Source: Octopus bimaculoides (lineage: Eukaryota). Taken from it: a stretch of DNA of 64,000 nt. Both the position numbers and the translations under genes were made by a program. Positions 16,685 through 62,924 of this stretch are shown here, piece after piece (within the stretch, counting starts at the first letter, position 1; every line of letters begins with the position of its first letter). The stretch lies in NCBI RefSeq assembly GCF_001194135.2, contig NC_069007.1, positions 20,858,418 through 20,922,417 on the forward strand, in the 5' to 3' direction. The notes beneath the pieces were generated by a model. The model had not been told where the DNA came from and made no database searches. It was given only the letters and a program-made list of their open reading frames with translations.

Positions 16685-18400
16685 TTATGTTTCACATTTG
16701 AGAGGCTTCCCTCTAGTGTGCAATCGTTCATGTCTTTTTAAAAGACTGCTAGAAATGAAAGATTTCCCACATATTTCACAACAATAGGGTTTTTCTCCCG
16801 TGTGTTTCCGTTTGTGTATGTTTAAATCACTGTTATTAACAAAGGATTTCCCACACACTTCACAGGCACAAGGTTTTTCTCCAGTGTGTCTACGCTTGTG
16901 ACTCATAAGATCAAAATTTCGAGAGAAAGATTTCCCACACATATCACAAAGATATGACTTTTCTCCCGTGTGTATTTGCTTGTGCACAACAAGGGAAGAA
17001 TTTTTACCGAACGACTTGTCACATATATTACAATGGTAAGGTTTCTCTCCTGTATGACTACGTACGTGGATAACAAGTTTCGAATTGTGAGTGAAAGCTT
17101 TTCNNNNNNNNNNNNNNNNNNNNNNNNNNNNNNNNNNNNNNNNNNNNNNNNNNNNNNNNNNNNNNNNNNNNNNNNNNNNNNNNNNNNNNNNNNNNNNNNN
17201 NNNNNNNNNNNNNNNNNNNNNNNNNNNNNNNNNNNNNNNNNNNNNNNNNNNNNNNNNNNNNNNNNNNNNNNNNNNNNNNNNNNNNNNNNNNNNNNNNNNN
17301 NNNNNNNNNNNNNNNNNNNNNNNNNNNNNNNNNNNNNNNNNNNNNNNNNNNNNNNNNNNNNNNNNNNNNNNNNNNNNNNNNNNNNNNNNNNNNNNNNNNN
17401 NNNNNNNNNNNNNNNNNNNNNNNNNNNNNNNNNNNNNNNNNNNNNNNNNNNNNNNNNNNNNNNNNNNNNNNNNNNNNNNNNNNNNNNNNNNNNNNNNNNN
17501 NNNNNNNNNNNNNNNNNNNNNNNNNNNNNNNNNNNNNNNNNNNNNNNNNNNNNNNNNNNNNNNNNNNNNNNNNNNNNNNNNNNNNNNNNNNNNNNNNNNN
17601 NNNNNNNNNNNNNNNNNNNNNNNNNNNNNNNNNNNNNNNNNNNNNNNNNNNNNNNNNNNNNNNNNNNNNNNNNNNNNNNNNNNNNNNNNNNNNNNNNNNN
17701 NNNNNNNNNNNNNNNNNNNNNNNNNNNNNNNNNNNNNNNNNNNNNNNNNNNNNNNNNNNNNNNNNNNNNNNNNNNNNNNNNNNNNNNNNNNNNNNNNNNN
17801 NNNNNNNNNNNNNNNNNNNNNNNNNNNNNNNNNNNNNNNNNNNNNNNNNNNNNNNNNNNNNNNNNNNNNNNNNNNNNNNNNNNNNNNNNNNNNNNNNNNN
17901 NNNNNNNNNNNNNNNNNNNNNNNNNNNNNNNNNNNNNNNNNNNNNNNNNNNNNNNNNNNNNNNNNNNNNNNNNNNNNNNNNNNNNNNNNNNNNNNNNNNN
18001 NNNNNTTTTCACACTGAAACCGCCTCTCGCCAGTATGTATCGTTTTATGTCTTGACAAAATAATATTAGAAACAAAATATTTCCCGCATATATTACAATG
18101 GAAAGGTTTCTCTCCTGTATGACTACGTACGTGGATAACAAGTTTCGAATTGTGAGTGAAAGCTTTTCCACATATTTCACACTGATATGGTTTCTCCTTC
18201 TTATGTATGTCTTTGTGTGTGATTAATTCATGCTCTGAAAAATATGTTTCCTTGCAAATCTCACAGCTATATTCAGTAATATTTCTCTGTCTTGATCTCT
18301 GTTCAGTGAATTTTTCATTGCGTGCAAGTTTCTCACAGTTGTATGTTTGTGAAGCTGAATCTACATCGTTAGAAGATCCCAAGTGATTAACATCCTCCAT
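16685..18400 (-). CDS. ZF5: C2H2 zinc-finger protein interrupted by a 903-N gap; 7 complete fingers visible (MEDV family)
   Basis: MEDV ATG at 18400 (another in-frame ATG at 18472). Fingers on both sides of gap 17104-18006; continuity across the gap is assumed, not seen. Confidence 0.8.
   Translation of the reverse strand: MEDVNHLGSSNDVDSASQTYNCEKLARNEKFTEQRSRQRNITEYSCEICKETYFSEHELITHKDIHKKEKPYQCEICGKAFTHNSKLVIHVRSHTGEKPFHCNICGKYFVSNIILSRHKTIHTGERRFQCEXXXXXXXXXXXXXXXXXXXXXXXXXXXXXXXXXXXXXXXXXXXXXXXXXXXXXXXXXXXXXXXXXXXXXXXXXXXXXXXXXXXXXXXXXXXXXXXXXXXXXXXXXXXXXXXXXXXXXXXXXXXXXXXXXXXXXXXXXXXXXXXXXXXXXXXXXXXXXXXXXXXXXXXXXXXXXXXXXXXXXXXXXXXXXXXXXXXXXXXXXXXXXXXXXXXXXXXXXXXXXXXXXXXXXXXXXXXXXXXXXXXXXXXXXXXXXXXXXXXXXXXXXXXXXXXXXXXXXXXXXXXXXXXXXXXXXXXXXXXXXXKAFTHNSKLVIHVRSHTGEKPYHCNICDKSFGKNSSLVVHKQIHTGEKSYLCDMCGKSFSRNFDLMSHKRRHTGEKPCACEVCGKSFVNNSDLNIHKRKHTGEKPYCCEICGKSFISSSLLKRHERLHTRGKPLKCET
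17104..18006. other. Assembly gap (903 N); other gaps at 3122-3224, 15481-15596, 50069-50141 and 51792-51801
   Basis: Runs of N. Confidence 1.
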
Positions 18401-18519
18401 AATTAATGACCAGGAATTCTTAAAAGCTGCAGAGGTGTATGTTAATATTAATCTAAAATAATTCAGTTTCATTTAACTGTTTACATCATTTTATGGAATT
18501 TGCTGAACTAATTACAATA

Positions 18520-28855: not shown

Positions 28856-29490
28856 TTAACCCTTTAGCATTCAGATGGTTTTGTCAAATGTAATACTTAT
28901 TTATGCACAACCATTCATCATCATCATCATTTAATATCTGTGGTCCATGCTGGCATGGGTTGGACAGTTTGACCAAGGCTGGAAGGCTGCACCAGACTCC
29001 AGTCTGATTTGGCATGGTTTCTACGGCTGGATGCCCTTCCTAATGCCATCCACTCTGAAAGTATAATTGGTGCTTTGACATGTCACTAGCACAGGTGCCA
29101 TTTGTGTGACACGACTGCAATTTTACTTGGCTTGATGGGTCTTCTCAAGCATAGCATAATGCCAATAGTCTCGGTCATTCGTCATTGCCTCTGTGAGGTC
29201 CAGCACTCAGAAAGTGCTTTTCACATGCAACCGGCATCAGCCACACAGCCTCCATGAGGCTCAACGCTCAAAAGATGCTTTTTACATTCCACTGGCACAG
29301 GTGCCAATTATGTGACACCAGCATCGTTTTGAATAAATGATGCATTATCACTTGGCTTCCAGATTTCAATGATGTGATTATTTTTAGATGACATTGCAGG
29401 GTAGGTGTAAAGGGCCGACTCTGTCCAGTTTGAACATAAAACATAGAATATTTGGGCCAGTTATGGCTGGTTTAAATGTTAAAGGGTTAA
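28856..29490. mobile_element. TTAA-flanked MITE (piggyBac-like ends) interrupted by a family C SINE (about 28914-29325)
   Basis: TTAACCCTTTAG ... TAAAGGGTTAA termini; the two halves join to match the uninterrupted copy at 19876-20094. Confidence 0.8.
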
Positions 29491-30035: not shown

Positions 30036-32201
30036 GTTTATTTATATATCTATATAATTATGATGATATAGAACATGGAGACTTGTTCATTCTCAAAATT
30101 TAATTTCTTTTATTTTACAATTTTATACATCATATTATTTATGGTCTTGATGACATACGTGTGTTTCTACTGCATGTATTACGGGCAGTTGCAGATGCAA
30201 TCGGGCATGATTTTTGGTGCAGCTTCTTCAGAATCTCTCCGTTTGGCTTATATATCATTATCATTTAACGTCCACCTTCCATGCTAGCATGGGTGGGACA
30301 GTTTGACAGTGACTGTTTTGGCAGGATTTTTACAGCTGGATGCTCTTCCTCACGTCAACCAGTTAACAGTGCAGTTTCTACCCTATTGCTGGTATCAGCT
30401 GGATGTTGAGCTGAGACACACCTGTCCAGCTTGTGCCATCATGAAAAATGGATACAAGACTAAATGATGGAACAGGTGCCACATAAAAAGCATCCAGTCC
30501 ACACAGTAAAGTGGTTGGCATCCAGCTGTAAAAACCATACCAAAACAGACACATTAGCCAGCTGTGGTCTTCTACCTGGCTGGCTCCTCCTGTCAAACCA
30601 TTCCACTCATGCCAGCATGGAAATCGGACATTAAGTGATAATGACGATGATAAAAATTACTTTCCAAATTTTTTTTTTTAATACATTTGAAAACACTAGA
30701 GACATTTTTAAATAAAATATGTTGGTGATATAAAGGAAAAACTAGTAACCAAGTTTTAAAAACAGAAATTAAGGTTTATTTGGATAAAAATGTTGAATTT
30801 CAATTAGATAACATTATGTAGGCAACAACGTTCACTTGTGATGTTTCAAATTCAATGAAGGCTGTAACATCATAAATTACCAGTCTCTGAGGATAGAGGG
30901 GCAAGCAATAAAAAAACCATATTCATAAATAAAATAGAAACACAAGCAATACTTTCATTATTATACAAGTCCTGTATTTTCCAGCATATCAGTCGACATA
31001 GCAGAGAATGTAAATATATAAACATCTAAACACCACCAGGTATCTTTCCAAGTCTTGCTGCATTTCACAAGGAATTTTTGGTCCTACAAAGTAGTCTTGG
31101 TGTAGGAGTCATCCTACCTTTTCTGGTTGTAAACAGGGATGGAGTTAATGCTTGTGGGGCCCTGGGCACTTCAAGTTCAGTGGGTCTCTCATACACAAAT
31201 TAAAATCCATGAAAAATTATCAAATTTACATCTCAAAATCAGTCTATTGCATTTAATTGAAATTGATTAATTAGTAGTTCTTAGGAAATTTAAATGCATC
31301 TGTCAGTGCAAAATGTCATCTCGACAAAGTACTGCAAGTTCCATCAATTTACCATTCTATACTACAATATTATCAAAACAACTTTCTTTTTATACTTTGC
31401 ATCTGAAAAATCTTTAATGAATTTCTCAAACTGTATATCATCATCATCGGTTAACATCCGCTTTCCATGCTAGCATGGGTTGGACGATTTGACTGCAGAC
31501 TGGCGAACCAGATGGCTGCACCAGGCTCCAATCTGATCTGGCAGAGTTTCTACAGCAGGATGCCCTTCCTAACTGCTCTCAACATCGAAAAGGCACAGAA
31601 TGTTTATTCTTTCATGGGTCACTGGAGATAATTCTTTATCAGATCCAATTTACTGAATGACTGTCCTCCTGAATAACTATTAGACATCAAGCTGATATAT
31701 ATATTCTAAGAACTACATCAACAGCTGGAAAACTATGAGCAAGCCCTTCATTACCGATTCAAAGAGCTTCTTCAAATGAGGTGAAATATGACCCAAGCTT
31801 ACAAAAGGCTGTAAACTACAATTTCTGCTATGAACACCTTACTAAAACCACAGGAAAAATCGATGAAACATCAGGTCTCTCTCAGCCAGAAATACTGCAA
31901 TGACAACAAAATACCAGGTCCCAGCTAGAAATACTGCAACGACCACGATACAATACTTCAGTCCAGTCGTTCTTGGAACTTTGGGTTCATAATTGCAGAA
32001 ATTTCCATGTGTAGAACACAAATTCGCAAACATTTTCCTGAAAATTCCAAAAAATAAAAAGTGATGATGGGTTACTTAAACCAGAAATTCCACTCATTTC
32101 CCCATATATTTGACAATAATAGAAGTTCCATCACCACAAACTTTATATTCTTTTGAGTGTTGTTAAATCATTAATGACAAATGATTTCTCCACATATTTC
32201 G

Positions 32202-38949: not shown

Positions 38950-39691
38950 TTATGAAATATAGCAGGAATCTTCCTTTCATTTGTGTAATTGCATAAAAAC
39001 TCCTACATTGTGAAATCTTTTGTCTCGAAAGGGATATCGCATGTCACAACTGCCTCCTCCCCACCAAAAGAAACATAACTGACACATCATCATCATTTGA
39101 TGTCTGTTTTCCATCCTGGCATGGATTGGATGGCTTGACAGGATCTTTCAAGGCCAGGGGCCACACCAGATTCCATAGTCTGTTTTTTGGTTGCCTTCTA
39201 CAGTTGGATGCCCTTCACGATGCCAATCACTTTACAGCGTGTACTGGGTGCTTTTTATGCAGCTCTATCACCAATGCTTTTTATGTGGCACCATTTCCAG
39301 TGGTTTTACATGGCACCAGCACCAGTGCTTTTAATGTGGCACCTGCACCCAAGAGAAAAATTCATTCAGTGTAAAATATGTTCTTGAGCAAAAATAAAAA
39401 AATAGTTGCCTGTACAGCTCAAGAATAACAATTGCAGGCAAAACTAATGGACAAAATCTGCTGCATCTTATTTTTCTGTGTTCATTACCATGTTACTAAG
39501 AATCTGCTTGAGAGGACATTTGACCTATTTCCTGTAATAGTAGGAATTTGGTGTAATGGAATTCAAAGTGACCCTCAAACTGCATATAAGGTGTTGCAAT
39601 CTTTATAAAATCAAAAAACTGAACTGTCACAAAATCTTGTTTTTGAGAAATAATTCTGATATTATTGTGTAAACTACTACATTTGCCAGCG

Positions 39692-39915
39692 TATGTGAGG
39701 AAGTACTGAAAAGTTCCTTGCTTTAATGGTATCACGAAAGGCCTGGTTGGAGGCTCAACCTTTCAAGTTCTTTTACAGGGCATAAAGAAACTGAAGAACC
39801 TCTAATATGTGTGTAAACCTAAGCGAAGAATATGGTGAATAAAATTGTAATTAACTGAATCTTCTCCATTTTCTTTTACCCAAACCCAGGAACTTTTTAG
39901 CACCCCCCCCTCATA
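39692..39915. mobile_element. Mariner-type MITE or deleted element
   Basis: Inverted ends TGAGG..TACTGAAAAGTTCC / GGAACTTTTTAGCACCCC..TCA with TA flanks; partial copy at about 49735-49790. Confidence 0.6.
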
Positions 39916-40096
39916 TGATGCATGTTTTACAGGGATATTTTGTGGAAGAAATATAATTAATGTTTGGTCATACACCCATTGAAGGATACTTCGATGTGCT
40001 TTTGTTGGGGGGAAATGTCTGATTCTATGCATGTAAATACAATATTATGACTATTACAGGAATAAAAAATGAAACCATAAATTTATCAAATAAACT

Positions 40097-40149
40097 ATGT
40101 TATAGGAGTACCATGTTATAGGAGTACCATGTTGTAGGAGTACCATGTT
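40097..40149 (+). repeat. 16-bp tandem repeat, 3.3 copies
   Basis: ATGTT(A/G)TAGGAGTACC. Confidence 0.95.
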
Positions 40150-40227
40150 TCAACTTTATCTTCTTTCAACTCAACTCTATAATTGTTTATATTAACAGGG
40201 GCAATAAACACTGAAGATGTTCAGAAA

Positions 40228-40395
40228 ACAGATTCCATCTCATGCCAGGGGAAGAAACTAGAAGTAGTTGATAGCTTCCGCTACCTAGGTGACCAAGTCT
40301 GTAGTGGGGGGTGGATGTTCTAAGAGCATTGCCACTAGAATAAGAATAGCCTGGGGAAAGTTCAGAAAACTCCTACCTCTGTTGGTAACAAAGAG
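40228..40395 (+). mobile_element. RTE-clade LINE reverse-transcriptase fragment
   Basis: Translates KLEVVDSFRYLGDQVCSGGGCSKSIATRIRIAWGKFRKLLPLL. Confidence 0.8.
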
Positions 40396-40890
40396 AAGTG
40401 GGTGTGCTTACACTGTAAAACCAGGAAAAAAAAAAAAGGCACGATCAGGCTCAAACTTCAACCACCGAGGACAACTCTGCCTTTCATCCTTTCAGGGTCA
40501 ATAAATTAAGTACCAGTGTCAATTTACTCCCCCTCCCCCACCCCCACAAAAAAACTTCTGGTCTTATACCAAAATTAATAAGAATTTTTATTGTTACATT
40601 TTATTATTGAAGAACATGTTGGAATTTGTTAGCACAGCGGGCAAAACGATTTGAGGTATTTCTTTCTGGTTTTTACGTTCTGAGTTCAAATTCTGATGAA
40701 GTTGATTTTTGCTTTTCATCCTTTCGAGGTCAATAAAATAATTTCGGCCTTTTGGCTAAGATCAAAGTGTAGTCAAGTTCTAGGATCAATGCAATCGACT
40801 GGTCAGCTCTCCTCAAAATTGCTGGTCTTGAAACCACTATACGGACAGAAGGGAGTGGTAGAATACAAAATTAGATTTGCACAAGATTTC

Positions 40891-41973
40891 TCACATTTCG
40901 CATTTAAAAGTCTCTCCTCCAATATGTATTTCTTTGTGTCTTTTTAAGCGACTGCTAGTGATAAAAGATTTTCCACAAATATCACAATGATAAGGCTTTT
41001 CTCCAGTATGTATTGTTTTGTGAACTGCAAGATGGGAATTTTGAGTGAAAGATTTCCCACATATTTCACAGTGGAAAGGTTTCTCTCCAGTATGGATTCG
41101 TTTATGTGTTGTTAAATTACTACTGTCCATAAAACATTCGCCACACGTATCACAGTGAAACGGATTTTCTCCAGTGTGAATTCTTTTGTGTTTCGTTAAA
41201 TCACCATTGGTGACAAAAGACTTTCCACATACTTCACAGTGAAACGGTTTTTCTCCCGTATGTATTTTTTCGTGTCTTACTAAATTACTTTTAGAGACGA
41301 AAGACTTGTCACATGTTCCACAATGATAAGGTTTCTCTCCGGTATGACTACGTATATGGACAACAAGACTCGAGTACTGAATGAAAGATTCCCCACATAT
41401 TTCACAGTGGCGCGGTTTTTCTCCAGTATGTATCCTTTTGTGACTTACTAAATAACTATTGTGCACAAAAGATTTTCCACAGACATCGCAGCGAAAGGGT
41501 TTCTCTCCAGTATGTATAATTTTATGCGTTGTTAAGTGACCATTTGTGATAAAAGATTTCCCACACATTTCACAGTGATATGGTTTTTCTCCAGTGTGAC
41601 TACGTACGTGAATTACAAGGTGAGAATTACTTATGAAAGATTTACCACATATTTTGCAGTGATACCGTTTTCCTCCGCTGTGACTACGTTTGTGTCTTGC
41701 TAATTGACTCTCAGAGACGAAGGATCTCCCACATATTTCACAGTAAGGTTTTTCTGGCTTGTGTACGTTACTATGTGTAAATAATTCATAGTCAGAAGGG
41801 AATGCTTTCTTACAGATGTCACAGCTATAGTTTGTAATATTTCTACGTAATGATCTTTGTTCAGTAAATGTTTCGTTATATAAAGCTTTCTTACCATTGA
41901 ATGTCTGTGTGATTGAATCTATATCGTTAAAAACAGTTGTATTAGAAGTATCCAACTGATTAACGTCTTCCAT
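40891..41973 (-). CDS. ZF12: C2H2 zinc-finger protein, 11 fingers (MEDV family)
   Basis: ORF MEDVNQLDTSN...; ends CEM*. Confidence 0.93.
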   Translation of the reverse strand: MEDVNQLDTSNTTVFNDIDSITQTFNGKKALYNETFTEQRSLRRNITNYSCDICKKAFPSDYELFTHSNVHKPEKPYCEICGRSFVSESQLARHKRSHSGGKRYHCKICGKSFISNSHLVIHVRSHTGEKPYHCEMCGKSFITNGHLTTHKIIHTGEKPFRCDVCGKSFVHNSYLVSHKRIHTGEKPRHCEICGESFIQYSSLVVHIRSHTGEKPYHCGTCDKSFVSKSNLVRHEKIHTGEKPFHCEVCGKSFVTNGDLTKHKRIHTGENPFHCDTCGECFMDSSNLTTHKRIHTGEKPFHCEICGKSFTQNSHLAVHKTIHTGEKPYHCDICGKSFITSSRLKRHKEIHIGGETFKCEM

Positions 41974-43303: not shown

Positions 43304-44571
43304 GTAATGTTATACGTTTGAATACTAATTTACGACTTATAGTAAAATTCATATGCAATCATGAACTTGGTGTATATTTCATAGCATCAAATGATTCTAA
43401 GTAAACTTTAGTCATTGCTCTTCTTTTATACAATGCTTAGAAATTTGTGTATGGCAGGCGTCAAGGATCATTATTACGCGCTTTAGAGTAATTCGACTGT
43501 ATGTGAAGTTTGGAAACAGGAACATGAAAAACCTACGTGGAGAAAACGAAACGAATTATGTGAATCTACAGAACATGTTTCTTTTGTACCTGCACGAAGA
43601 CGATGTAGAGAACCGCATTTGCCATTACAATCTTATATATTGTAACAATGTCTTTAATTTAAAGCTGTTCACTACGTGCAATTTTAATTATATTTAACAA
43701 TCAGTCGTTTTTTTGGAGGAAGGTGGTGGTCAATTGAAGTAAAATTGTCAAAAGTTTGATTTTGTAGTAAAAGTAAAAAAATATTTTTGTCTTTATAGTT
43801 AAGGAAAATTTTTAGAATTCCATAGCATTCAATGGTGCGTTTCTTTCCTTTATTTATTTATTTTATTTTAAATTTAATTTTCAGAAATAATATATGTTCT
43901 TTTGCAGCGTACGAACATTTCGTTGTTTGCATCTCATTGTAGGTGGGGTCGATGTAATCGACTTCATCTCTTTGTCTGTCCTCTCTATGTTTAGCCCTCC
44001 GTGGGCAATAAATAAATAAATATGAGTTTGTGATATAGTTTGTTCTAAAAGAACATCAACGTTTAAGTGGAGATAAATATTACCTCTCAGCGTCAATGCT
44101 GTCTCTGCCACTAATAGTGTTTTCTCTCTGATTTCAGAATAACAGACAACATTGCCATTAAAGAATGTTTAACTTCAGATGCGTCTTCAAAATCATCTTT
44201 TAAAGAATAAGAGAATGTCTGTATAGACCTGGAGTAGAACCAATGTGGAATATTTCCTCTGGACTGAGATTTTTAGCAGGATTTGTGTTTCACATTCAGA
44301 AGTGTGTACAAGAAAATTTTTGCAGTCTAATTTAACTTGGCCAAATTTACGAAAGACTTTTGCGTCATCTTTAGCTGCTGACAACTGTTACAATTGATGG
44401 AATTGTAGTAGTAGAAATATTTGAGAATAAAATATAAAAATAAAAAAAAAAACAACAACATTCATATATTGTTTTGAGAGAAGAAAAGCTCTCCCAAATG
44501 ACAGTGAGAACAAGTTTAAGTGTAGAACAAAGCTTTATAAGATTGATCTTCTTGATGCGATCCTAAAAGAG

Positions 44572-46011: not shown

Positions 46012-47685
46012 CTTAACTCTACACAAATGTATTGTGTTAGGAGCAATGTTACATAACATTTTTGTAAAATCAATCTCCCATAAAAATAAAAAAAACAGAA
46101 TTCCTGTTAAATACATGGATGAGTAGCCATATCAGAGTTCAGAGTTTCTCTGTGAGAAAAAGGCTTATATAAATGATAAATGTATCATTGGAAATATAAC
46201 CATGTGATTGCAAACCCATTTTATATAACCACAGCTATATTACATTTGCAACACGATTTGCTACTGTGATCATCATCATCATCATCATCATTTTAAAATC
46301 CACGTTTTGATGCTTGCATGTGTCAAATGGAATTCATTGAGGCAGGTTTTCAATGGCTGGATACTCTTCCTGTCACCAACTTTCACTTGTCTGTAAGTAA
46401 GGGAATATTTCCCCATGGTGGTCATATCTTCAATGAATATTGGAAATGAATAGTACCATTCATATGACTGGCACTCATTTACAACTATCACACGATATTA
46501 AGACAAGGAGGCACACACACACACACACACATTATATATGAAGGACGTCTTTCAGTTTCTCTCTACTTAATCCAGTCACAGGGCTTGGTTGGCCTGTGGC
46601 TACAGTGGAAGACGAATACCACTTCAAAGTGCCATGCAGAAGGACTGAAACTGAAAACCGAGTGTTGGGAAGCCAACTTAACCGCACAGCCATGCCTGTC
46701 CCTGTTATTCTTGATAAAAACATTCTTTCAGAATATTACTACAGAAGGACTATGTAGCATATTTTCAGATGGAAGGGAAGAGACTATCGGTTCATTGGAC
46801 ATTGAGAGTAAATAACTGCTCTGAACAAATGATCATCATCAGCTTTATTTTGTATCCGAGAGTTTAATTTCTTCTTTGCTTCTCTCATTCGTTTGTGGTG
46901 ATGGCGTTGATGACTCTAGACTGATTCTTGCATAGAAGAGTCATTGGTATTGGTTGCATGGCAATGTTGATGGAAGATGAGGTTGATTTTTGTTGCCTCT
47001 TTCTCTTCTGATGGCTCCAAAGATTTCGGTTCTGATGGTGATGAAACACCACCACTTGGTATGCTCTCAGGCTTGTGTTTCAAACCATAAACCCTGATTC
47101 TTCAATAAAATTGGTTTACTCTTAAATTATTCTACTGTTATTTAATATATCTGTAGTGGATCTTGTATGCATGAAGTGGATTCAATCCACCATAGTGTTA
47201 ATTTAAATTAACACTGCAACAGAACTTTTCCCACGGTGGAACAATAGTTTTTCTCTGACAGCAGTTTCGCATTTTCCAGATGCCTTATCAGGGGAAAAAT
47301 CCAGGTGGAATATTGAAGAATAATGGGGTGATCAAAACGGGACAACGGATGTAAAACAAACAAAGTAAGGGGTTAATTTAGTTAAGTTTTATTTGTTAAA
47401 TGCTGTTGTTTGGAATTTTCTGCAGAAAATAGTCTGTGATGGTGAGTGGGGTGGCACTAGGATTGTGGCTTTAAAACCAAGGGGGCAGCAGCCTGAAAAA
47501 GCTTGGGAAGCACTGCTATAAAGTATACCATATACAGCAGTATATAGTTATTGGATACACCAATTTTACTTATTAAGTGCATTCCTGGAAGCTATTGTTT
47601 TCATCTTATATCTCATACACAAAATGTAGCAACAAAAATCAGTGCTGGCCACAATTTCTAGAGAATATCTGTAGAGATAACCTTA

Positions 47686-48056
47686 TTTGTTGGCACTCCG
47701 TCGCTTACGATGTCGAGGGTTCCAGTTGATCCGATCAACGGAACAGCCTGCTCGTGAAATTAACGTGCAAGGGGCTTCACACTCCACAGACACGTGTACC
47801 CTTAACGTAGTTGCCGGGGATATTCAGCGTGACACAGTGTGACAAGGCTGACCCTTTGAATTACAGGCACAACAGAAACAGGAAGTAAGAGTGAGAGAAA
47901 GGTGTGGTGGAAGAGTACAGCAGGGTTCGCCACCATCCCCTGCCGGAGCCTCGTGGTGCTTTAGGTATTTTCGCTCAATAAACACTCAGAACGCCCGGTC
48001 TGGGAATCGAAACCGCGAGCCCGCTGCCCTAACCACTGGGCCATTGCGCCTCCACC
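47686..48056 (-). mobile_element. Full-length tRNA-derived SINE (family E) with a 12-bp target-site duplication
   Basis: tRNA-like head GGAGGCGCAATGGCCCAGTGGTTAGGGC on the minus strand; GAGATAACCTTA at 47674-47685 and 48057-48068. Confidence 0.9.
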
Positions 48057-49937
48057 GAGATAACCTTAACAAAGTAATGTAAAAGCACATTGTTAATGCA
48101 GTAGAATGTGGGATTGACTTATAAAAACGTTTAGTATATTATGCTTGCATAACAGAATACCACAAGTCATTATTATTTATGTACCAGCTTCCAGGAATGC
48201 ATTTAATATGATGTCTCGTATACAAAATGTAGCAACAAAAATCAGTGCTGACCATAATTTCTATAGAATATCTGTAGAGATCAGAAGTCGGCAAGCAGTC
48301 AGGAATGTTAGCACACAGATGGACGAAATGCCGTTTAGCATCTTGTCTAGTGTGCCAACGATTCTGCCAACTCGCCTCAAATTATTACCCACTGAAATAC
48401 GTAAATTTCCCCCAACTTCGGAATTGTGCTTTTAAACCCCTAACTGTGTAAAGTGCCTCTGGAACCCTTAACTGTATTAAGAGCCTCAGGACTTATTGAG
48501 AGACTGCTGTTAAAAGTAGAGTTATTTCCCCTGTTACTTAATTACTAAATCTTCGGTTGTTTCACACACGTCTACGTAACTTGATCAGTTCCACTTTACA
48601 ACTGATATTTAACGGGATCCAATTAAATCCACATGATTGGTAATTAACTGTGTAAAGAAAGAGATACAGCATTCATTATTACGTTGATCTACATCAACTT
48701 TTGTTATAAAAACCTAGAAATTCCCTCGAAACTGTTATTGTCCAGTCTGATTTAAGTTCAGACGTCTCGATCGCATCGTCACATTTTCCTCTTTAGCTTT
48801 ATATACTAATTATGTAAGTATTACATTTATATAAACACTTATATTGTATATATATGTCATGTTGATACATTTCTTTCTTATGATTTCGTATTACACTTGA
48901 AATAGCCTGACATCTCCGAAAGAAGAAATCATTTTCGTCTTTAATAAACGTAAAATAATTTGTATATACACACAGTCACAGATCTGTGTGTATATGTTTA
49001 CATGTATGTCTGTGTATAAATAAATAAAAATATATATCTATATATATATATACTGCTGGTATATAAAAATGTATTTTCTGAAATTGCAAATTATTTAAAA
49101 TATAAATATATAATTTTCAACAGAGAGAATTTATCAAAATAGAGAACAAATGAAGTTTGAAGTTAAGTTTAAAAATAAATGTGATACTTATACTCTGGAA
49201 TGGTGTCGAATTTGTTCCAATAACTTTCCGAAGATTTCGTCCTTAAATTCATAACGCCACATGCATATATTTGTGTGTGTGTGTCTGCATTTGTCCCCCC
49301 AACCTAAGTCGCTTGACAACCGATGTTGCATTGTTAACGTCTCCGTAACGTAGCAGTTCGGCAAAAGAAACCGATAGAGTACGTACTAGTCTTACAAAGA
49401 ATAAGTCCTGGGGATCGATTTCTTTGACTAAAATCCTTGAAGACTGCTCCATCATGGCTGTAGCCAAATGACTGAAGTAAAAGAGTAAAAAAATATATAG
49501 ATATAGATAGAGGGAGAGAGAGTGTTCAAATTTAGTGAAAACAAAAGATAAAGAAAGGTGAGAGAAGGGGACAACAGGTATGTGTATTAGTTTAATGCTC
49601 TGGAAGAATGGAAAAGTCATTGATGTTTCGAGGCTACACTCTTTGGTAGAAAGGATTAAGAGGGGGGGGGGATGAAAAACGATGATAAGTGTGTGAATCA
49701 GAGAGTGAAATAAAATCATAATTAACTGACCCTCCTGTATTTTCTTTTACCCAAAGCCAGGAACTTTTTACATCACCTTGTACATATACACCTATCAGTC
49801 TTGTAAATGGAAGACTATATTGGTTAAGTTCATTTGTTCACATGAAGGAATATATCTACAGTTTATGAGTGTAGAAATAAAGTAAAATTTCACTGTTGTA
49901 TCTCGACTTATTAAGTAACCACTCCTTCTTATTCACT

Positions 49938-49953
49938 TCCTCTATTATTTCAG
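49938..49953 (+). other. Splice acceptor upstream of ZF14
   Basis: TCCTCTATTATTTCAG|GACATCAGA, homologous to the other CD-family acceptors. Confidence 0.65.
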
Positions 49954-50363
49954 GACATCAGACGACGTTGACAGAAGCGAATTCTTCACTTCAGATGTAT
50001 CATCTATATTAGCTTTTAAGGATTCAAGGAGGTTGTTATACAGAGATATAATCCATGCTGAACTATTGNNNNNNNNNNNNNNNNNNNNNNNNNNNNNNNN
50101 NNNNNNNNNNNNNNNNNNNNNNNNNNNNNNNNNNNNNNNNNGGACAAATTTATGAAGGAGTTCACAGCATCTTTAAATACCAACAAAGATCTCATTTGGT
50201 GGAAGTATAGGAGAGGCATGTTCATTGTGATTAAACTATATATATATTAAAGAAAGAACAGTAAAAATATTCTCAATATCTATGTATTCTGGTGATAGAG
50301 AAAAACTCATGGGAATATGAATTATATAAGAAGCTGAAAGGATTGATATCTTTTTCTTGGGAA

Positions 50364-51326
50364 ATGCCAAAAGTAACAGGAAAATCATCATACGACTGTG
50401 ATATCTGTAAAAAGTCCTTCTCTCAAAAGTGTAACCTTAAGACGCACGAATGCATTCATACAGGAGAGAAGCCATTTCACTGTGATATCTGTGGTAAATC
50501 ATTCTCTCAGACAGGTGGTTTAACTGCTCACAAACGTAGTCATACAGGTGATAAACCTTATCATTGTGATATATGTGATAAATCATTCTCTCATACAGGT
50601 AGCTTAACTACACACAAATATATTCATACTGGAGAGAAACCATATCACTGTGATATCTGTGGAAAATTATTCTCTCAAAATGATACCTTAGCAAAACATA
50701 AACGTATTCATACAGGAGAGAAACCATATCACTGTGATACTTGTGGCAAGTCCTTCTCTCAGACAGGTACTCTAACAAGACACAAACGTATTCATACAGG
50801 AGAGAAACCGTATCATTGTGATGTCTGTGGTAAATCATTTTCTCATACTGGTAATTTAACTATACACAAATATATTCATACAGGAGACAAACCATATCGC
50901 TGCGATATCTGTGGTAAATCATTCTCTCAGACAGGCAGCTTAACTACACACAAGTACACGCATACAGGTGAGAAGCCATATCACTGCGATATCTGTGGTA
51001 AATCATTCTCTCAAACCAGTCACTTATCTGCTCACAAGTATATTCATACAGGAGAGAAACCATATTGCTGTGATGTCTGTGGCAAAGCATTCTCAGAAGG
51101 AAGTAAATTAACTAAACACATACGTAGTCACACAGGAGACAAACCCTATCCCTGTAACATCTGTGGTAAATCATTCTCTGATGGAGCTGTCTTGACCAAA
51201 CACAGACACATTCATACAGGAGAGAAACCATATCAGTGTGACATTTGTGGTAAATCATTCTCACGTAGTGGTGATTTAGCTAAACACAGACGTGTTCATT
51301 TAGAGATAGAAACCATAATGCTATGA
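50364..51326 (+). CDS. ZF14: C2H2 zinc-finger protein, 11 fingers (CD family)
   Basis: Track ORF starts at GTG 50292; ATG at 50364 (MPKVTGK...). Confidence 0.9.
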
Positions 51327-51452
51327 TGATTATCATCCAGTATTTTAAATCTGGGACTTGTCCCCGTTAACAGGTGTGGCTGGATCTACCTTGATGCCAT
51401 AGCAACCACCCTCACTTCTCAAACCAACCTTCCCAATCTCTTCCTCCACCTG

Positions 51453-51468
51453 TCCTCTATTATTTCAG
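51453..51468 (+). other. Splice acceptor upstream of ZF15
   Basis: Identical 16-mer to the ZF14 acceptor. Confidence 0.6.
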
Positions 51469-51952
51469 GACATCAGACAACATTGACAGAAGCGAATTCT
51501 TCACTTCAGATGTATCATCTATATTAGCTTTTAAGGATTCAAGGAGGTTGTTATACAGAGATATAATCCATGCTGAACTATTGTGAAATATTTCTTCTGA
51601 ACTGCAATTTATAAATTTCTCAACTTCAGCATCTGGAATGTGTGTGAGATGCTTTTGTGTTCTACATAATCATGGACAAATTTATGAAGGAGTTCACAGC
51701 ATCTTTAAATACCAACAAAGATCTCATTTGGTGGAAGTATAGGAGAGGCATGTTCATTGTGATTAAACTATATATATATTAAAGAAAGAACNNNNNNNNN
51801 NGAGGCATGTTCATTGTGATTAAACTATATATATATTAAAGAAAGAACAGTAAAAATATTCTCAATATCTATGTATTCTGGTGATAGAGAAAAACTCATG
51901 GGAATATGAATTATATAAGAAGCTGAAAGGATTGAAATCTTTTTCTTGAGAG

Positions 51953-52999
51953 ATGCCAAAAATGACAGGAAAATCATCATACGACTGTGATATCTGTAAA
52001 AAGTCCTTCTCTCAAAAATGTAACCTCAACACGCACAAATGCATTCATACAGGAGAGAAGCCATTTCACTGTGATATCTGTGGTAAATCATTCTCTCAGA
52101 CAGGTGGTTTAACTGCTCACAAACGTAGTCATACAGGTGATAAACCTTATCGTTGTGATATCTGTGGAATATTATTCTCTCAAAAAGATAACCTAGCAAA
52201 ACATAAACGTATTCATACAGGAGAGAAACCATATCACTGTGATACTTGTGGCAAGTCCTTCTCTCAGACAGGTACTCTAACAAGACACAAACGCATTCAT
52301 ACAGGAGATAAACCATATCACTGTGATATCTGTGGTAAATCATTTTCTCATACTGGTAATTTAACTATACACAAATATATTCATACAGGAGACAAACCAT
52401 ATCGCTGCGATATCTGTGGTAAATCATTCTCTCATACAAGTAGGTTAACTACACACAAGTACATGCATACAGGTGAGAAGCCATATCACTGCGATATCTG
52501 TGGTAAAGCATTCTCTCAAAACAGTCACTTATCTGCTCACAAACTAATTCATACAGGGGAGAAACCATATTGCTGTGATGTCTGTGGCAAAGCATTCTCA
52601 GAAGGAAATAAATTAACTAAACACATACGTAGTCACACAGGAGACAAACCCTATCCCTGTGATATCTGTGGTAAATCATTCTCTCAGACAGGTAGCTTAA
52701 CTATACACAAGTACACGCATACAGGAGAGAAACCACATCAGTGTGATATCTGTGGTAAATCATTCTCTCAAACCAGTCACTTATCTGCTCACAAGTATAT
52801 CCATACAGGGGAGAAACCATATCCCTGTGATATCTGTGGCAAAGCATTCTCAGAAGGAAGTAAATTAACTCAACACAAACGCATTCATACAGGCGAGAAA
52901 CCATATCAGTGTGATATCTGTGAAAAATCTTTCTCACGTAGTGGTGATTTAGCTAAACACAGACGTGTTCATATTGAGATGGAAACCATAATGCTATGA
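51953..52999 (+). CDS. ZF15: C2H2 zinc-finger protein, 12 fingers, close tandem duplicate of ZF14 (CD family)
   Basis: ORF MPKMTGK...ETIML*; same N- and C-termini as ZF14. Could be an uncollapsed haplotype. Confidence 0.82.
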
Positions 53000-54332
53000 T
53001 AGCTGTAATAAATCTTTTTCTCAAAAAGCTAATTAACGTGTGTATGCATTTCTGCAGAAAAATAACAAATGATATCAAAAATCACTCCAGAATATTAACA
53101 GAATTTACATAAATGTATATTTAAGGGAAACAAAATATATAGGTGTGATAACAATCTTCAAATGTTATATTTTATATAACCACGTCTGTATCTACACTGG
53201 TATATGAACATAACACTGTCATCATCATCATTGTTTAACGTCCACCTTCCATGCTAGCATGGGTGAGATGGCGTGACAGGGGCTGGTCAGGCAGATGTCT
53301 GCACCAGACTTCTGTGACTGTCATATTTTGAACAAAAGTATTACTTAAATGGAATATATAAATAAAAGTATTTATTTGTATATTTGGTCTTACATATCTG
53401 CTGAAGGAAAAATAGATGCTTTGGATGTCTCTAGGCCATGATAATATATACATGTATCTAATATATATATCTTCTGGATTTTATATCAATTGTTTCCTTT
53501 TTATTCTGGTTTAAATTTTATAATGTATGCTTCCCATCAAAAGAATAATTCTATTTATAGTACGGTTCCTTCCCAATTTGATGGGTAGACTGAATGTTCA
53601 TTTACAAGTACCACTGCAACATTAACTTTTAAACGGCAGGAAAGGTTTGCATGAGTGTACAGTAATACCTCACTTTACAAGGACCCACTTTATGAGACCC
53701 AGGATTTACAAGCTTTTCTGAGTTTTACTTTCTGTTTACGAGATTTTGCTTTATGAACGTTCTCCAAGAACAAATTAACTCATATATCGAGACATTACTG
53801 TATCTTGTAAACAGGTACAAAAAATAACAACACAACAAAAGGTATCTCTTTTTCTAAAGGACAATTCTTATATTTATTTTCATTTCAAACAAATTTTAAA
53901 AATTTATAATCCTCGTTAGTCTCTCGCACAATAAAACTTACAATACCATTATGAATGAGTGTCATAAAGTATTTGTTTCCATTTGCAATCAGTGGATGGA
54001 GAAGAATCTGTACACTTTTCCCATTTAGAGCTGGTTGAAGCATCAGTTTTTTTTTTCTCTGCTGTGTAGAGTGTCATCACCATCTGATGATGAAGGAAGG
54101 TCAGAAAAAAAGAAAAGAACTTCATCGCTGTATAAATCTTCTGTTTGCAACCCGATTTCTGGTTTTGATAGGGCCGCCTATGCTTAGGCACATGTGAGGC
54201 AGTAGACAGTCAGGCATCAATTAATGATGAAACACCAGTTGATGGTGTCCAGAAATTAACATCTACATAAAGTGGTTGGTATAATTTGTGAATTACCACC
54301 ATCGTCAATGTTTTAATATTCATTCTGCATGC

Positions 54333-54980: not shown

Positions 54981-56462
54981 TCATGCAGTGTGCATTGTTG
55001 CATGTTTCTTTAAGCTATCACTTCTGGTAAACGATTTCCCACATATTTCACAAGGATGCGGTCTTTCTCCGGTATGTGTTCTTCTGTGAACTATTAGATT
55101 TGAATTATAAGAAAAAGATTTACCACATATTTCACAACACAGTTTTTCTCCAGTGTGGATTTTTTTGTGTTGTGACAAGACATTATTATTGGAGAAAGAT
55201 TTGCCGCAGATGTTACATTTAAAGGATTTCCCTCCAGTATGTGTCCTTCTGTGAGCAGAAAGATAAGATTTATGAAAGAAACTTTTCCCACATATTTCAC
55301 AGTAACAAGTTTTCTCTCCACTGTGTATTCTCTTATGGACAGAAAGATTGAAATTATTAGAGAAATATTTGTTACATATTTCACAATGACTGAGTTTTTC
55401 TCCAGTGTGTGTTCTTCTGTGTCTTTTTAAAGAATTATTCAAACTAAAAGACATTCCGCATATCTCACAGACAAATGGTTTTTCTCCAGTGTGTGTTGTT
55501 TTGTGTCTTTTTAAAGAATAATTCAAGCTAAACGACTTCCCACAAATCACGCAGAGAAAAGCTTTTTCTCCGGTGTGTGTTCTTTTGTGTCCAACAAGAT
55601 TGGCATTGTTAGAGAAAGATTTGCCACAAATTTCACAACAATATGGTCTTTCCCCAGTATGGGTCCTGTTGTGTATTTTTAATTTACTACTACACATAAA
55701 TGCTTTCCCACATATTTCACAGTGGAAGGGTATTTGTCCAGTATGGGCCCTGTCATGTAGTTTTAACTTACTACTAGATATAAATGCTTTTCCACATATT
55801 CTACAGTGATACGGTTTCTCTCCTGTATGAGTCCTGTTGTGCTCTTTTAAGTGACAACTAGTTACAAATGCTTTTCCACATATTTCACAGTGATAAGGTT
55901 TTTCTCCAGTATGGATCCTTTTATGTGTTTTTAACTGAATATTAGACACAAATGATTTTCCACAAACTTCACAGCAGAAGGGTTTTTCTCCAGTATGAAT
56001 CCTGTTGTGTATTTTCAAATTTGTTCTCGACACAAAAGTATTTCTGCATATTTCACAGTGATAGAGTTTTTTCCCAGCGTGTGTTTTTATGTGTTGTGTT
56101 AAATTACTTTTAGAGCCAAATGCTTTTCCACATATTTCACAGGGATAAGGTTTTTCTCCCGTATGAGTTCTGTTATGTATTTTTAATTGACTACTACACA
56201 CAAACGACTTGCCGCATATTTCACACTGATATGGTTTTTTCCTATTGTGCATTTCTTTGTGTTCGAAGATTTCCTGTTCTAAAGAGAAAAGTTTCCCACA
56301 AACATCACATTTATGTTTCGTAATATTTACCTGGAACAATCGTTTAGTAAATGTTTCCCCATGTAGAGATTTCTCATATTTCTCCGTGTCCCTAACTGTA
56401 TTTGTATTGTTAAAAACAGTTGTGTTAGACGTATTGAAGTCCTTAACGTCCTCCATGTTCAT
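54981..56462 (-). CDS. ZF16: C2H2 zinc-finger protein, 16 fingers (divergent MEDV family)
   Basis: ORF MNMEDVKDFNTSN...; MEDV ATG at 56456. Confidence 0.93.
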   Translation of the reverse strand: MNMEDVKDFNTSNTTVFNNTNTVRDTEKYEKSLHGETFTKRLFQVNITKHKCDVCGKLFSLEQEIFEHKEMHNRKKPYQCEICGKSFVCSSQLKIHNRTHTGEKPYPCEICGKAFGSKSNLTQHIKTHAGKKLYHCEICRNTFVSRTNLKIHNRIHTGEKPFCCEVCGKSFVSNIQLKTHKRIHTGEKPYHCEICGKAFVTSCHLKEHNRTHTGEKPYHCRICGKAFISSSKLKLHDRAHTGQIPFHCEICGKAFMCSSKLKIHNRTHTGERPYCCEICGKSFSNNANLVGHKRTHTGEKAFLCVICGKSFSLNYSLKRHKTTHTGEKPFVCEICGMSFSLNNSLKRHRRTHTGEKLSHCEICNKYFSNNFNLSVHKRIHSGEKTCYCEICGKSFFHKSYLSAHRRTHTGGKSFKCNICGKSFSNNNVLSQHKKIHTGEKLCCEICGKSFSYNSNLIVHRRTHTGERPHPCEICGKSFTRSDSLKKHATMHTA

Positions 56463-57378
56463 TCACGAATTCTTCGAAGCTGGAGTACGTCTGTGAGTTA
56501 ATTACGGTTTAGCTTTTTGTCACTAATATCAAGAAGGTCTGTTTAATTGCGTGGAACTACAACGATCGTTCCATGTATACATATTACTTAGCAGCAGAAA
56601 AACTGTTGCCGACTGGGTCCCTATATCCATGTAGAGGCAATCAATTTCTATTTACGTATTGTCAAAGTACTCGATACAAATAAGCGTGTGTGTATATATG
56701 TGGATCTAGATATTAACCTATGTGTGTGTGTGCTGCTGAATGTAGTTTAGCAATGCGAAATGGCACAAGACAACGATAGATGGATAGTTAACTCTACAAC
56801 GGATTCTTTGTTTCTTAAGAACCACAGAAAACGATTTAACTCTCGGACAAACAGGCTCGTAGGTTCAATACCTTCTTTAACTCTGTGTGTTAATTAGTGA
56901 GAGAGATCCTATTAAATTGTGACAGTTGTTTACGCTGGTGAGTAGAAGAAAAGTCCACAGTTTGTGATGTGTTTTGCCAATCCAAATAATTTGTGTTTTC
57001 GCTTTGAAATCCAAACGAAAAGTGTGTCAGCAAAAGTTGAATGATTTGTTGGTCGTTAAAAGTTATTTACTGTCTTCTTCCTGTAAATTAGGGAACAATT
57101 AACGATGTTATTTTTGTGATGAAATGAAATATCAATCATGAAGGTAATGGAAATCACCGATCCAGGAACACGCGGAGGTTCTCTTACCTTAGCCACAATT
57201 ATTAACGTTTACTTTAACTTGAGATAATTACTACAGAAAACATTAATAAAATTGCTCCCCTTGTTTCAATGACATCGGTGACATACGTAAAAAATCCTGT
57301 ATGTAATTTGATTTATACAGACATACGTACTACATACATATAATCAAGCAATATATTCCTGGTAATGTCATATAATCA

Positions 57379-62571: not shown

Positions 62572-62924
62572 GTGGAGGCGCAATGGCCCAGTGGTTAGGG
62601 CAGCGGACTCGCGGTCATAGGATCGCGGTTTCGATTCCCAGAGCGGGCGTTGTGAGTATTTATTGAGTGAAAACACCTAAAGCCCCGCGAGGCTCCGGCA
62701 GGGGATGGTGGCGAACTCTGCTGTACTCTTCCACCACAACTTTCTCTCACTCTTTCTTTCTGTTTCTGTTGTACCTGTAATTCAAAGGGCCAGTCTTGTC
62801 ACACACACTGTGTCACGCTGAATATCTCCGAGAACTACGTTAAGGGTACACGTGTCTGTGGAGTGCTCAGCCACTTGCACGTTAATTTCACGAGCAGGCT
62901 GTTCCGTTGATCGTAAGCGACGGA
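62572..62924 (+). mobile_element. tRNA-derived SINE family E, near full length
   Basis: High identity to 47686-48056; small 3' internal deletion. Confidence 0.88.

Follow-up and report, generated by a model that had tools for sequence, protein, structure and literature searches.

In the Drosophila genes lola and mod(mdg4), the choice among alternative 3' exons decides which zinc-finger module is joined to the BTB domain encoded by the common 5' exons. Another arrangement is that of Drosophila Adh-Adhr, where, as Brogna and Ashburner reportedly found in 1997, the promoterless downstream member of a tandem duplicate is expressed on a dicistronic mRNA. Octopus bimaculoides is said to carry about 1,800 C2H2 genes, a count attributed to the 2015 study of Albertin et al. 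Tandemly expanding C2H2 clusters have been described from cephalopods, with a very large expansion of these zinc-finger genes (ZNF) in octopus genomes (PMC9068888), and from the vertebrate KRAB-ZNF and fish FiNZ-ZNF genes (PMC10547256); the birth and the regulation of octopus C2H2 genes are poorly known. Here, we analyse two neighbouring genes, ZF14 and ZF15, on the O. bimaculoides chromosome CM046627.1 (GCA_001194135.2, ~20.86-20.92 Mb), a pair that bears on both. It lies within a stretch of 64 kb (the window, to which all positions refer) that holds 17 open reading frames (ORFs) with 7-20 C2H2 fingers on both strands, as well as five N gaps. We consider it highly probable that the two genes result from a genuine local tandem duplication within this C2H2 cluster and propose, far more tentatively, that ZF15 depends on the region upstream of ZF14.

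Boundaries of the duplicated segment

The pair consists of copy A, the ZF14 unit (49938..51327, ~1407 bp with its gap set to 90 bp), and copy B, the ZF15 unit (51453..53000, 1491 bp after deletion of a 57-bp gap artefact), both on the forward strand and compared by BLAST and MAFFT. A first-pass annotation had claimed that their homology runs from 16 bp before an acceptor to the ZF14 stop, at ATGCTATGAT, and both methods reproduced these coordinates: the homology sets in 16 bp 5' of tttcag/G, with putative exon starts at 49954 (A) and 51469 (B), and ends with ATGCTATGAT at 51318-51327 and 52991-53000, respectively. The distance of 142 bp between the stop codon of ZF14 (TGA, 51324-51326) and the second acceptor-like motif likewise proved exact. 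Towards their 5' ends the copies hardly differ, 129 of 131 positions being identical between 49938-50068 and 51453-51583 (mismatches at 49964 and 49967) and all 118 between 50142-50259 and 51674-51791.

Past the shared end, copy B continues into a relic thirteenth finger (53000..53037, forward strand) whose "CNKS" codons supply an AATAAA at 53007-53012. The relic aligns to the finger units with a score of 60 (shuffles, 19 +/- 3.4; ZF14 flank, 21), and the 84-bp array delineated by Tandem Repeats Finder reaches 53037 in ZF15 and 51317 in ZF14. Copy A is cut within this relic finger, leaving ZF14 without the ancestral 3' end, i.e., the relic and its AATAAA. ZF15 had been described as an exon-sized duplicate of ZF14; it is indeed a truncated duplicate, yet its limits are not quite those of an exon: the duplicated segment is not a natural exon, as it starts 16 nt upstream of the motif and stops inside the relic finger, before the probable 3' end of the exon, which points to a duplication at the DNA level and not to an RNA-mediated one.

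The two assembly gaps reported for the pair are indeed present, both in the leaders that precede the finger arrays, and neither affects a reading frame. Gap 1 (50069-50141, 73 N) is situated 222 bp 5' of the ZF14 ATG (50364), and its flanks align collinearly with copy B, in which 90 bp (51584-51673) occupy the matching interval. Gap 2 (51792-51801, 10 N) is situated 151 bp 5' of the ZF15 ATG (51953), and the 47 bp before it (51745-51791) are repeated exactly behind it (51802-51848) as an overlap of the contig ends. Owing to this exact overlap, gap 2 hides no sequence, and the 57 bp at 51792..51848 (the 10 N together with the repeated 47 bp) are artefactual; across the mended join, copy B matches the uninterrupted copy A at 100% of positions. 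Once mended, both leaders measure 427 nt. The placement of both gaps in the identical leader is what a short-read assembler would produce when facing a true exact repeat of ~400 bp.

Could the ZF14 unit nevertheless have been misplaced, whether because a contig is chimeric, because a repeat contig was used twice, because haplotypes differ in its presence or because the copy number is wrong? The local sequence and its gaps stem from a 2015 short-read shotgun assembly that was later merely re-scaffolded with Hi-C, both gaps lie in the pair, the gap-free stretch 50142-51791 opens and closes with the same 118 bp, as a loop-like path would, and the ZF15 array is joined on by way of the 47-bp overlap. 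Against this, the junction of ZF14 stop, spacer and second acceptor lies inside that gap-free stretch, and the acceptor-proximal ends of the copies differ by two substitutions, so that two distinct junctions exist. With two entries into the leader (the upstream sequence U and the spacer, told apart by these two bases) and two exits (the arrays), every linear resolution still contains U-leader-ZF14-spacer-leader-ZF15. Moreover, the copies are too different for alleles: their arrays show a synonymous divergence (dS) of 0.10, comparable to the ~8% by which O. bimaculoides and O. vulgaris diverge genome-wide (PMC6472339), as well as three whole-finger indels, and the sequences flanking the copies are mutually unrelated. 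At this dS the pair may be older than the split of the species. ZF14 and ZF15 are thus paralogues, and the uncollapsed haplotype that had been raised as a real alternative is disfavoured. The pair resembles false duplications and haplotigs in its internal gaps and its short-read origin, but where these show near-identity throughout and homology reaching contig ends or gaps, here only the leader is near-identical, the copies are collinear and ~5% diverged (more than alleles would be), each has structural changes of its own, and their boundaries lie in continuous sequence away from the gaps. We regard an assembly artefact as quite improbable; what risk is left would lie in contig chimerism, in a miscounted copy number or in a polymorphism for presence/absence.

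Coding arrays and leaders

Both copies encode poly-C2H2 proteins, with tandem C-x2-C-x12-H-x3-H fingers and TGEKP-type linkers. The ZF14 coding sequence (CDS; 50364..51326, forward strand) translates into 320 amino acids with 11 fingers (11 Pfam zf-C2H2 stretches) and no effector domain, and that of ZF15 (51953..52999, forward strand) into 348 amino acids with 12 fingers. Pfam returned finger families only (E-values for ZF14 and ZF15, respectively: PF00096, 7e-60 and 5e-67; PF13465, 3e-93 and 4e-102), without any N-terminal KRAB, SCAN, BTB or FiNZ effector, and just nine residues precede finger 1. ZF15 and ZF17 have an in-frame TGA one or two codons ahead of the ATG (two codons in ZF15), which means that both of these proteins start at that ATG.

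Pairing of the fingers (A1 with B1, A2 with B2, A4-A6 with B3-B5, A7-A9 with B6-B8 and A11 with B12) leaves A3 absent from copy B. B9-B11 repeat the same trio as an older copy within the array, and A10 is a B9/B11 hybrid. This pattern implies a 13-finger ancestor from which one unit was lost in B and two in A, and the three resulting indels are all whole-finger and in frame. With fingers paired one to one, the arrays differ by ~4.8% (38 of 792 nt), not by 10-17%. Over the paired fingers dS amounts to 0.10 and nonsynonymous divergence (dN) to 0.037 (dN/dS 0.36, Fisher p = 0.006), none of the 92 zinc ligands in both copies (48 in ZF15) is altered, and in a simulation ~25 random substitutions spared the ZF15 ORF and its 48 ligands in 1.6% of trials (p ~0.016). 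Judged by these values, both ORFs are intact and show signs of constraint. The recognition helix takes 8 of the 19 amino-acid changes, a weak trend (p = 0.08); the helix changes affect five of the nine shared fingers, four of them at canonical contact positions, and the two proteins should bind different DNA.

The leaders (ZF14, 49954..50363, holding gap 1; ZF15, 51469..51952; both on the forward strand) are non-coding: stop codons interrupt every frame (10, 5 and 9 per frame), and each copy has ten upstream ATGs. They are identical over ~396 of their 427 nt, 306 of which are sequenced in both, with zero mismatches over these 306 positions at 49968-50346. Overall, two differences in 317 sites set the leader apart from the synonymous sites of the arrays (p = 3e-6), and the simplest reading of this identity is that the 5' part of the unit has undergone gene conversion. 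The sole leader differences, at 49964 and 49967 (CpG in copy A) versus 51479 and 51482 (CpA in copy B), are as expected from methylated-CpG deamination.

One block of the leader, GTGRAATATTTCYTSTGRA, is conserved far better than the rest in five paralogues (the 50069-50100 equivalent, 51583-51602; 60870-60850; 833-852; 44245-44265). Its TGA closes a 38-codon ORF that begins just after the acceptor-like motif. A search among 1.84 billion representative proteins found no relatives of this ORF, its lone match being a spurious repeat protein, and since no in-frame splice path to the finger ORF was found either, we rejected it as coding. A donor site and a regulatory element are possibilities for the block.

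Given exchange between the copies, the duplication might be real and ZF15 transcriptionally dead or passively read through, a young copy on its way to becoming a pseudogene, its ORF being kept by gene conversion with ZF14 and other paralogues and not by selection on a protein. The loss of the conserved 5' flank, the active sequence exchange visible in the ~396-nt identical leader, the lack of a near-identical annotated protein or a stand-alone gene call for ZF15, and the usual decay of fixed partial duplicates would all agree with a silent copy. Such a copy is hard to reconcile with a dN/dS of 0.36 at a dS of 0.10, with 48 of 48 zinc ligands intact and with indels that are exclusively whole-finger and in frame. 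Conversion does not explain this integrity, as the arrays have not been homogenised (4.8% divergence, different finger sets), and a strong AATAAA and the acceptor context have also been kept. A silent ZF15 consequently appears unlikely to us.

Upstream region and possible expression of ZF15

Immediately before the ZF14 leader lies a motif resembling a 3' splice site (49938..49953, forward strand), a pyrimidine tract followed by TTTCAG. Its core, ATTTCAG/RA, is invariant in six paralogues (ZF1, ZF13, ZF14, ZF15, ZF17 and ZF18), positions -40..-4 being 70-84% pyrimidine, and we treat it as a putative splice acceptor. Further upstream, the conserved 5' flank of ZF14 (49782..49937, forward strand) holds a block of ~85-170 bp (TAGAAATAAAGTAAAATTTC ... 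CTTATTAAG) in common with ZF17, ZF18 and ZF1, the homology of the ZF14 flank beginning at -172 for ZF18, at -100 for ZF17 and at -85 for ZF1. ZF18 is an additional paralogue just past the end of the window (window-equivalent 66457-67059; seven fingers, one of them degenerate) that has both the acceptor motif and the upstream block (within 65520-67059; exon start 65687) and whose leader bears an insertion of ~376 bp (66003-66379). ZF15 retains only the last 16 nt of this upstream region and is without CTTATTAAG, a branch-site candidate.

The block may represent a promoter, the 3' end of an intron with its branch site, or a short 5' exon (with a mini-intron). ZF15 had been called promoterless, which is correct in so far as it is without the block conserved in ZF14, ZF17, ZF18 and ZF1, and overstated in so far as that block may not be a promoter. 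Upstream of ZF1, ZF13, ZF14, ZF17 and ZF18 we found no conserved exon 1, promoter or donor, and beyond -172 only repeats are shared; weak donor candidates for an upstream exon are AAA/GTAAAA at ~49880 and CAG/GTGTGG at 51371. Whatever its nature, an upstream exon could share nothing coding with the finger exons, because stop codons interrupt every frame of the leader and the in-frame TGA precedes the ZF15 ATG. A general cassette mechanism of ZNF diversification, as earlier envisaged, does not hold for the cluster: every other paralogue with such a leader comes with an upstream block of its own and is spaced by kilobases, which makes ZF14/ZF15 a one-off.

The spacer (51328..51452, forward strand), 125 bp of filler at the duplication junction, is unique in the 70.5 kb of readable DNA and has no match among the paralogue 3' flanks and acceptor-upstream regions. 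Its derivation from the abundant "catcatcat..." repeat, which resembles a short interspersed nuclear element (SINE), was rejected, as alignment scores fell within the shuffle range. With 68% pyrimidine and 45% C, the last 60 nt of the spacer rank within the top 1.25% of windows (a post hoc observation), and 47 nt past the ZF14 stop there is a donor-like CAG/GTGTGG (51371-51379), CAGGTR being expected 0.08 times per 125 bp (also post hoc). From this site to the ZF15 acceptor runs what can be read as an intron-like GT...AG interval of 95 nt, rich in pyrimidines and C (51374..51468, forward strand).

As first stated, there is no AATAAA in the 142 bp that lead from the ZF14 stop to the second acceptor-like motif, and no ATTAAA either. 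This absence is true yet not unusual for the cluster, and hence uninformative, since the first AATAAA or ATTAAA follows the stop by 7-997 nt across 18 cluster genes (435 nt for ZF14, an ATTAAA in the ZF15 leader). The first hexamers after the ZF14 stop that resemble polyadenylation signals all fall in the ZF15 leader (TATAAA at 51610, ATTAAA at 51762 and 51778).

A further way to account for the pair is that the duplication is real and ZF15 an independent gene, either with its own start in the spacer, the end of ZF14 or the leader, or because ATTTCAG is no acceptor and these are single-exon genes with a minimal promoter inside the duplicated part. Compact genes are plausible in this cluster. 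The second ZNF subfamily (ZF4-ZF12 and ZF16, at 13600-42100 and 54984-56620, with N-termini MEDVNHLDTSN...) carries its upstream motifs within ~130 nt of the ATG (CGACACCGCC at ~-130, GATTATA at ~-60 and TTTCTACAG at ~-27), and its members ZF9 and ZF10 stand head to head with 536 bp from ATG to ATG, which suggests compact, possibly bidirectional promoters. Public gene calls for ZF8-11, ZF16 and ZF17 are single-exon CDSs from the first ATG, one public model starts at the ZF15 ATG, and no paralogue has a conserved exon 1 upstream. These calls carry CDS ranges only, however, and are silent on transcription starts; the homology that ZF14, ZF17, ZF18 and ZF1 share for 85-170 bp ahead of the motif implies something functional that ZF15 lacks, and, with its pyrimidine tract, the motif looks more like a 3' splice site than like an initiator. 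We judge independence of ZF15 to be improbable.

The explanation that we favour as a whole, at slightly less than even odds, is that of a real tandem duplicate in which ZF15 depends on the ZF14 upstream region. Most likely, a segment of ~1.41 kb, from 16 bp 5' of the acceptor-like motif to just past the stop, was duplicated in head-to-tail orientation, the copies being separated by 125 bp of filler; ZF14 kept the conserved 5' flank and lost the ancestral 3' end, and ZF15 kept the 3' end and lost the 5' flank. The pair thereby shares a single 5' control region and a single strong polyadenylation signal, and between these lie two complete ORFs that consist of fingers only and start at separate ATGs. 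With ZF15 devoid of the upstream block and ZF14 of its ancestral 3' end, it looks like one transcription unit with two ORFs, and as the acceptor motif is kept, the block lost and the ORF intact and constrained, transcription of ZF15 from the ZF14 upstream region is a reasonable reading; co-transcription of the two genes is a possibility that we entertain with similar caution. The arrays later diverged by whole-finger loss and point changes, while the leader was homogenised, most simply by gene conversion.

If a pre-mRNA starting upstream of ZF14 stayed uncleaved until the hexamers at 51610, 51762 or 51778 or the AATAAA at 53007, two acceptors would compete for one donor. Use of the first would give a ZF14 mRNA with ZF15 in its 3' untranslated region (UTR), and use of the second, with the ZF14 exon skipped, a ZF15 mRNA; alternatively, removal of the 95-nt spacer interval would give a dicistronic mRNA. 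It is doubtful that one promoter and one 5' exon yield two different complete zinc-finger proteins by tandem-acceptor choice or by removal of the putative 95-nt intron.

Several observations weigh against a dependence of ZF15 on ZF14. Acceptor, exon 1 and co-transcription alike are deduced from the DNA sequence; the block could be a promoter and not an intron, in which case the motif would be no acceptor and ZF15 simply promoterless; and gene conversion could keep a silent ZF15 intact, weakening the argument from constraint. Ten upstream ATGs in 427 nt, where ~8 are expected by chance, are odd for a functional 5' UTR. The underlying sequence is that of the 2015 short-read assembly, and the second leader is connected to the ZF15 array across gap 2. 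Exact look-ups found neither the ZF14 nor the ZF15 CDS recorded as a stand-alone product, and queries with ZF14, its N-terminal 88 amino acids and ZF16 returned no near-identical protein (best matches, 58-76% identity), although such homologue searches are dominated by generic poly-zinc-finger proteins, the length of the hits is apparently limited to ~1.75 times that of the query and the ZF16 query did not return ZF16 itself. Finally, the automated public calls join ZF13 with ZF14, in a product of 708 amino acids from the ZF13 ATG (44572) to the ZF14 stop (51326), and ZF15 with ZF18, in a product of 483 amino acids from the ZF15 ATG (51953) to the ZF18 stop (67059) that passes over two opposite-strand genes; they do not join ZF14 with ZF15.

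Both of these calls look like predictor chimeras, and they neither support nor refute co-transcription of ZF14 and ZF15. When modelled as products of a single GT-AG intron, the 708- and 483-residue proteins gave three candidates and one candidate, respectively, none of which was present in the protein collection. A third public product, of 304 amino acids, runs from the ZF12 ATG to 39281 (39281-41973) and is also chimeric. These chimeric calls are of practical relevance to annotation, and two sequence errors can be corrected: the 57 artefactual bp around gap 2 can be removed, and gap 1 can be set to ~90 bp.

The cluster and known systems

Upstream of ZF14 and of ZF17/ZF18, repeats recur at similar distances (47732-48055 and 62572-62913; 49265-49487 versus window-equivalent 64961-65184), namely a tRNA-like SINE with 88% identity and an abundant "gcttgacaaccgatg..." element in opposite orientations. 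Copies of a SINE-like "catcatcatcat-ttaacgtcc-catgctagcatggg" element (28915-29080, 30255-30370, 31440-31500, 46265-46400 and 53215-53320) sit a few hundred bp downstream of ZF13, of ZF15 and elsewhere in the window; the spacer showed no significant similarity to this element. The ZF5 "ORF" of 595 codons (16688-18472) traverses a gap of 902 N (17104-18005), and neither its length nor its finger count is real. Searching Rfam with the whole window gave no match at the gathering score.

In most respects the locus behaves as other tandem C2H2 clusters do, with local duplication, in-register gain and loss of 84-bp fingers, divergence partly in the recognition helix, and genes of the same family on both strands, and ZF14/ZF15 is likely an ordinary product of tandem duplication in a fast-expanding ZNF cluster. 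Unlike KRAB-ZNF and FiNZ-ZNF genes, the two have no effector exon, and the duplicated unit is partial, with its 5' flank missing and 142 bp from stop to acceptor-like site. An array of large paralogous exons that diversifies protein from one locus also recalls the clustered protocadherins and UGT1A; these have variable first exons with their own promoters and shared constant exons, of which ZF14/ZF15 would be the mirror image. Cephalopod protocadherins are reported not to use the variable-exon mechanism (PMC9068888).

Were one promoter to serve two proteins here, partial-gene tandem duplication would add DNA-binding proteins to the octopus ZNF expansion without duplicating promoters, and a shared promoter would show how a partial duplicate stays expressed while evolving a new binding array (three finger-level changes). 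In this respect, Adh-Adhr is a close parallel, with tandem paralogues, a downstream copy without its own 5' control region and a short intercistronic distance; whereas downstream expression is demonstrated for Adhr, ZF15 is known from its sequence, and the mended inter-ORF leader of 569 nt with its 10 AUGs would hinder reinitiation. As in lola and mod(mdg4), adjacent finger exons, each behind an acceptor (here a putative one), could give mutually exclusive DNA-binding modules. The finger exons of those genes have no start codon of their own, whereas the exons of ZF14 and ZF15, only two in number, are complete ORFs, each with its own ATG and stops upstream, so that only a 5' UTR and a promoter could be shared between them.

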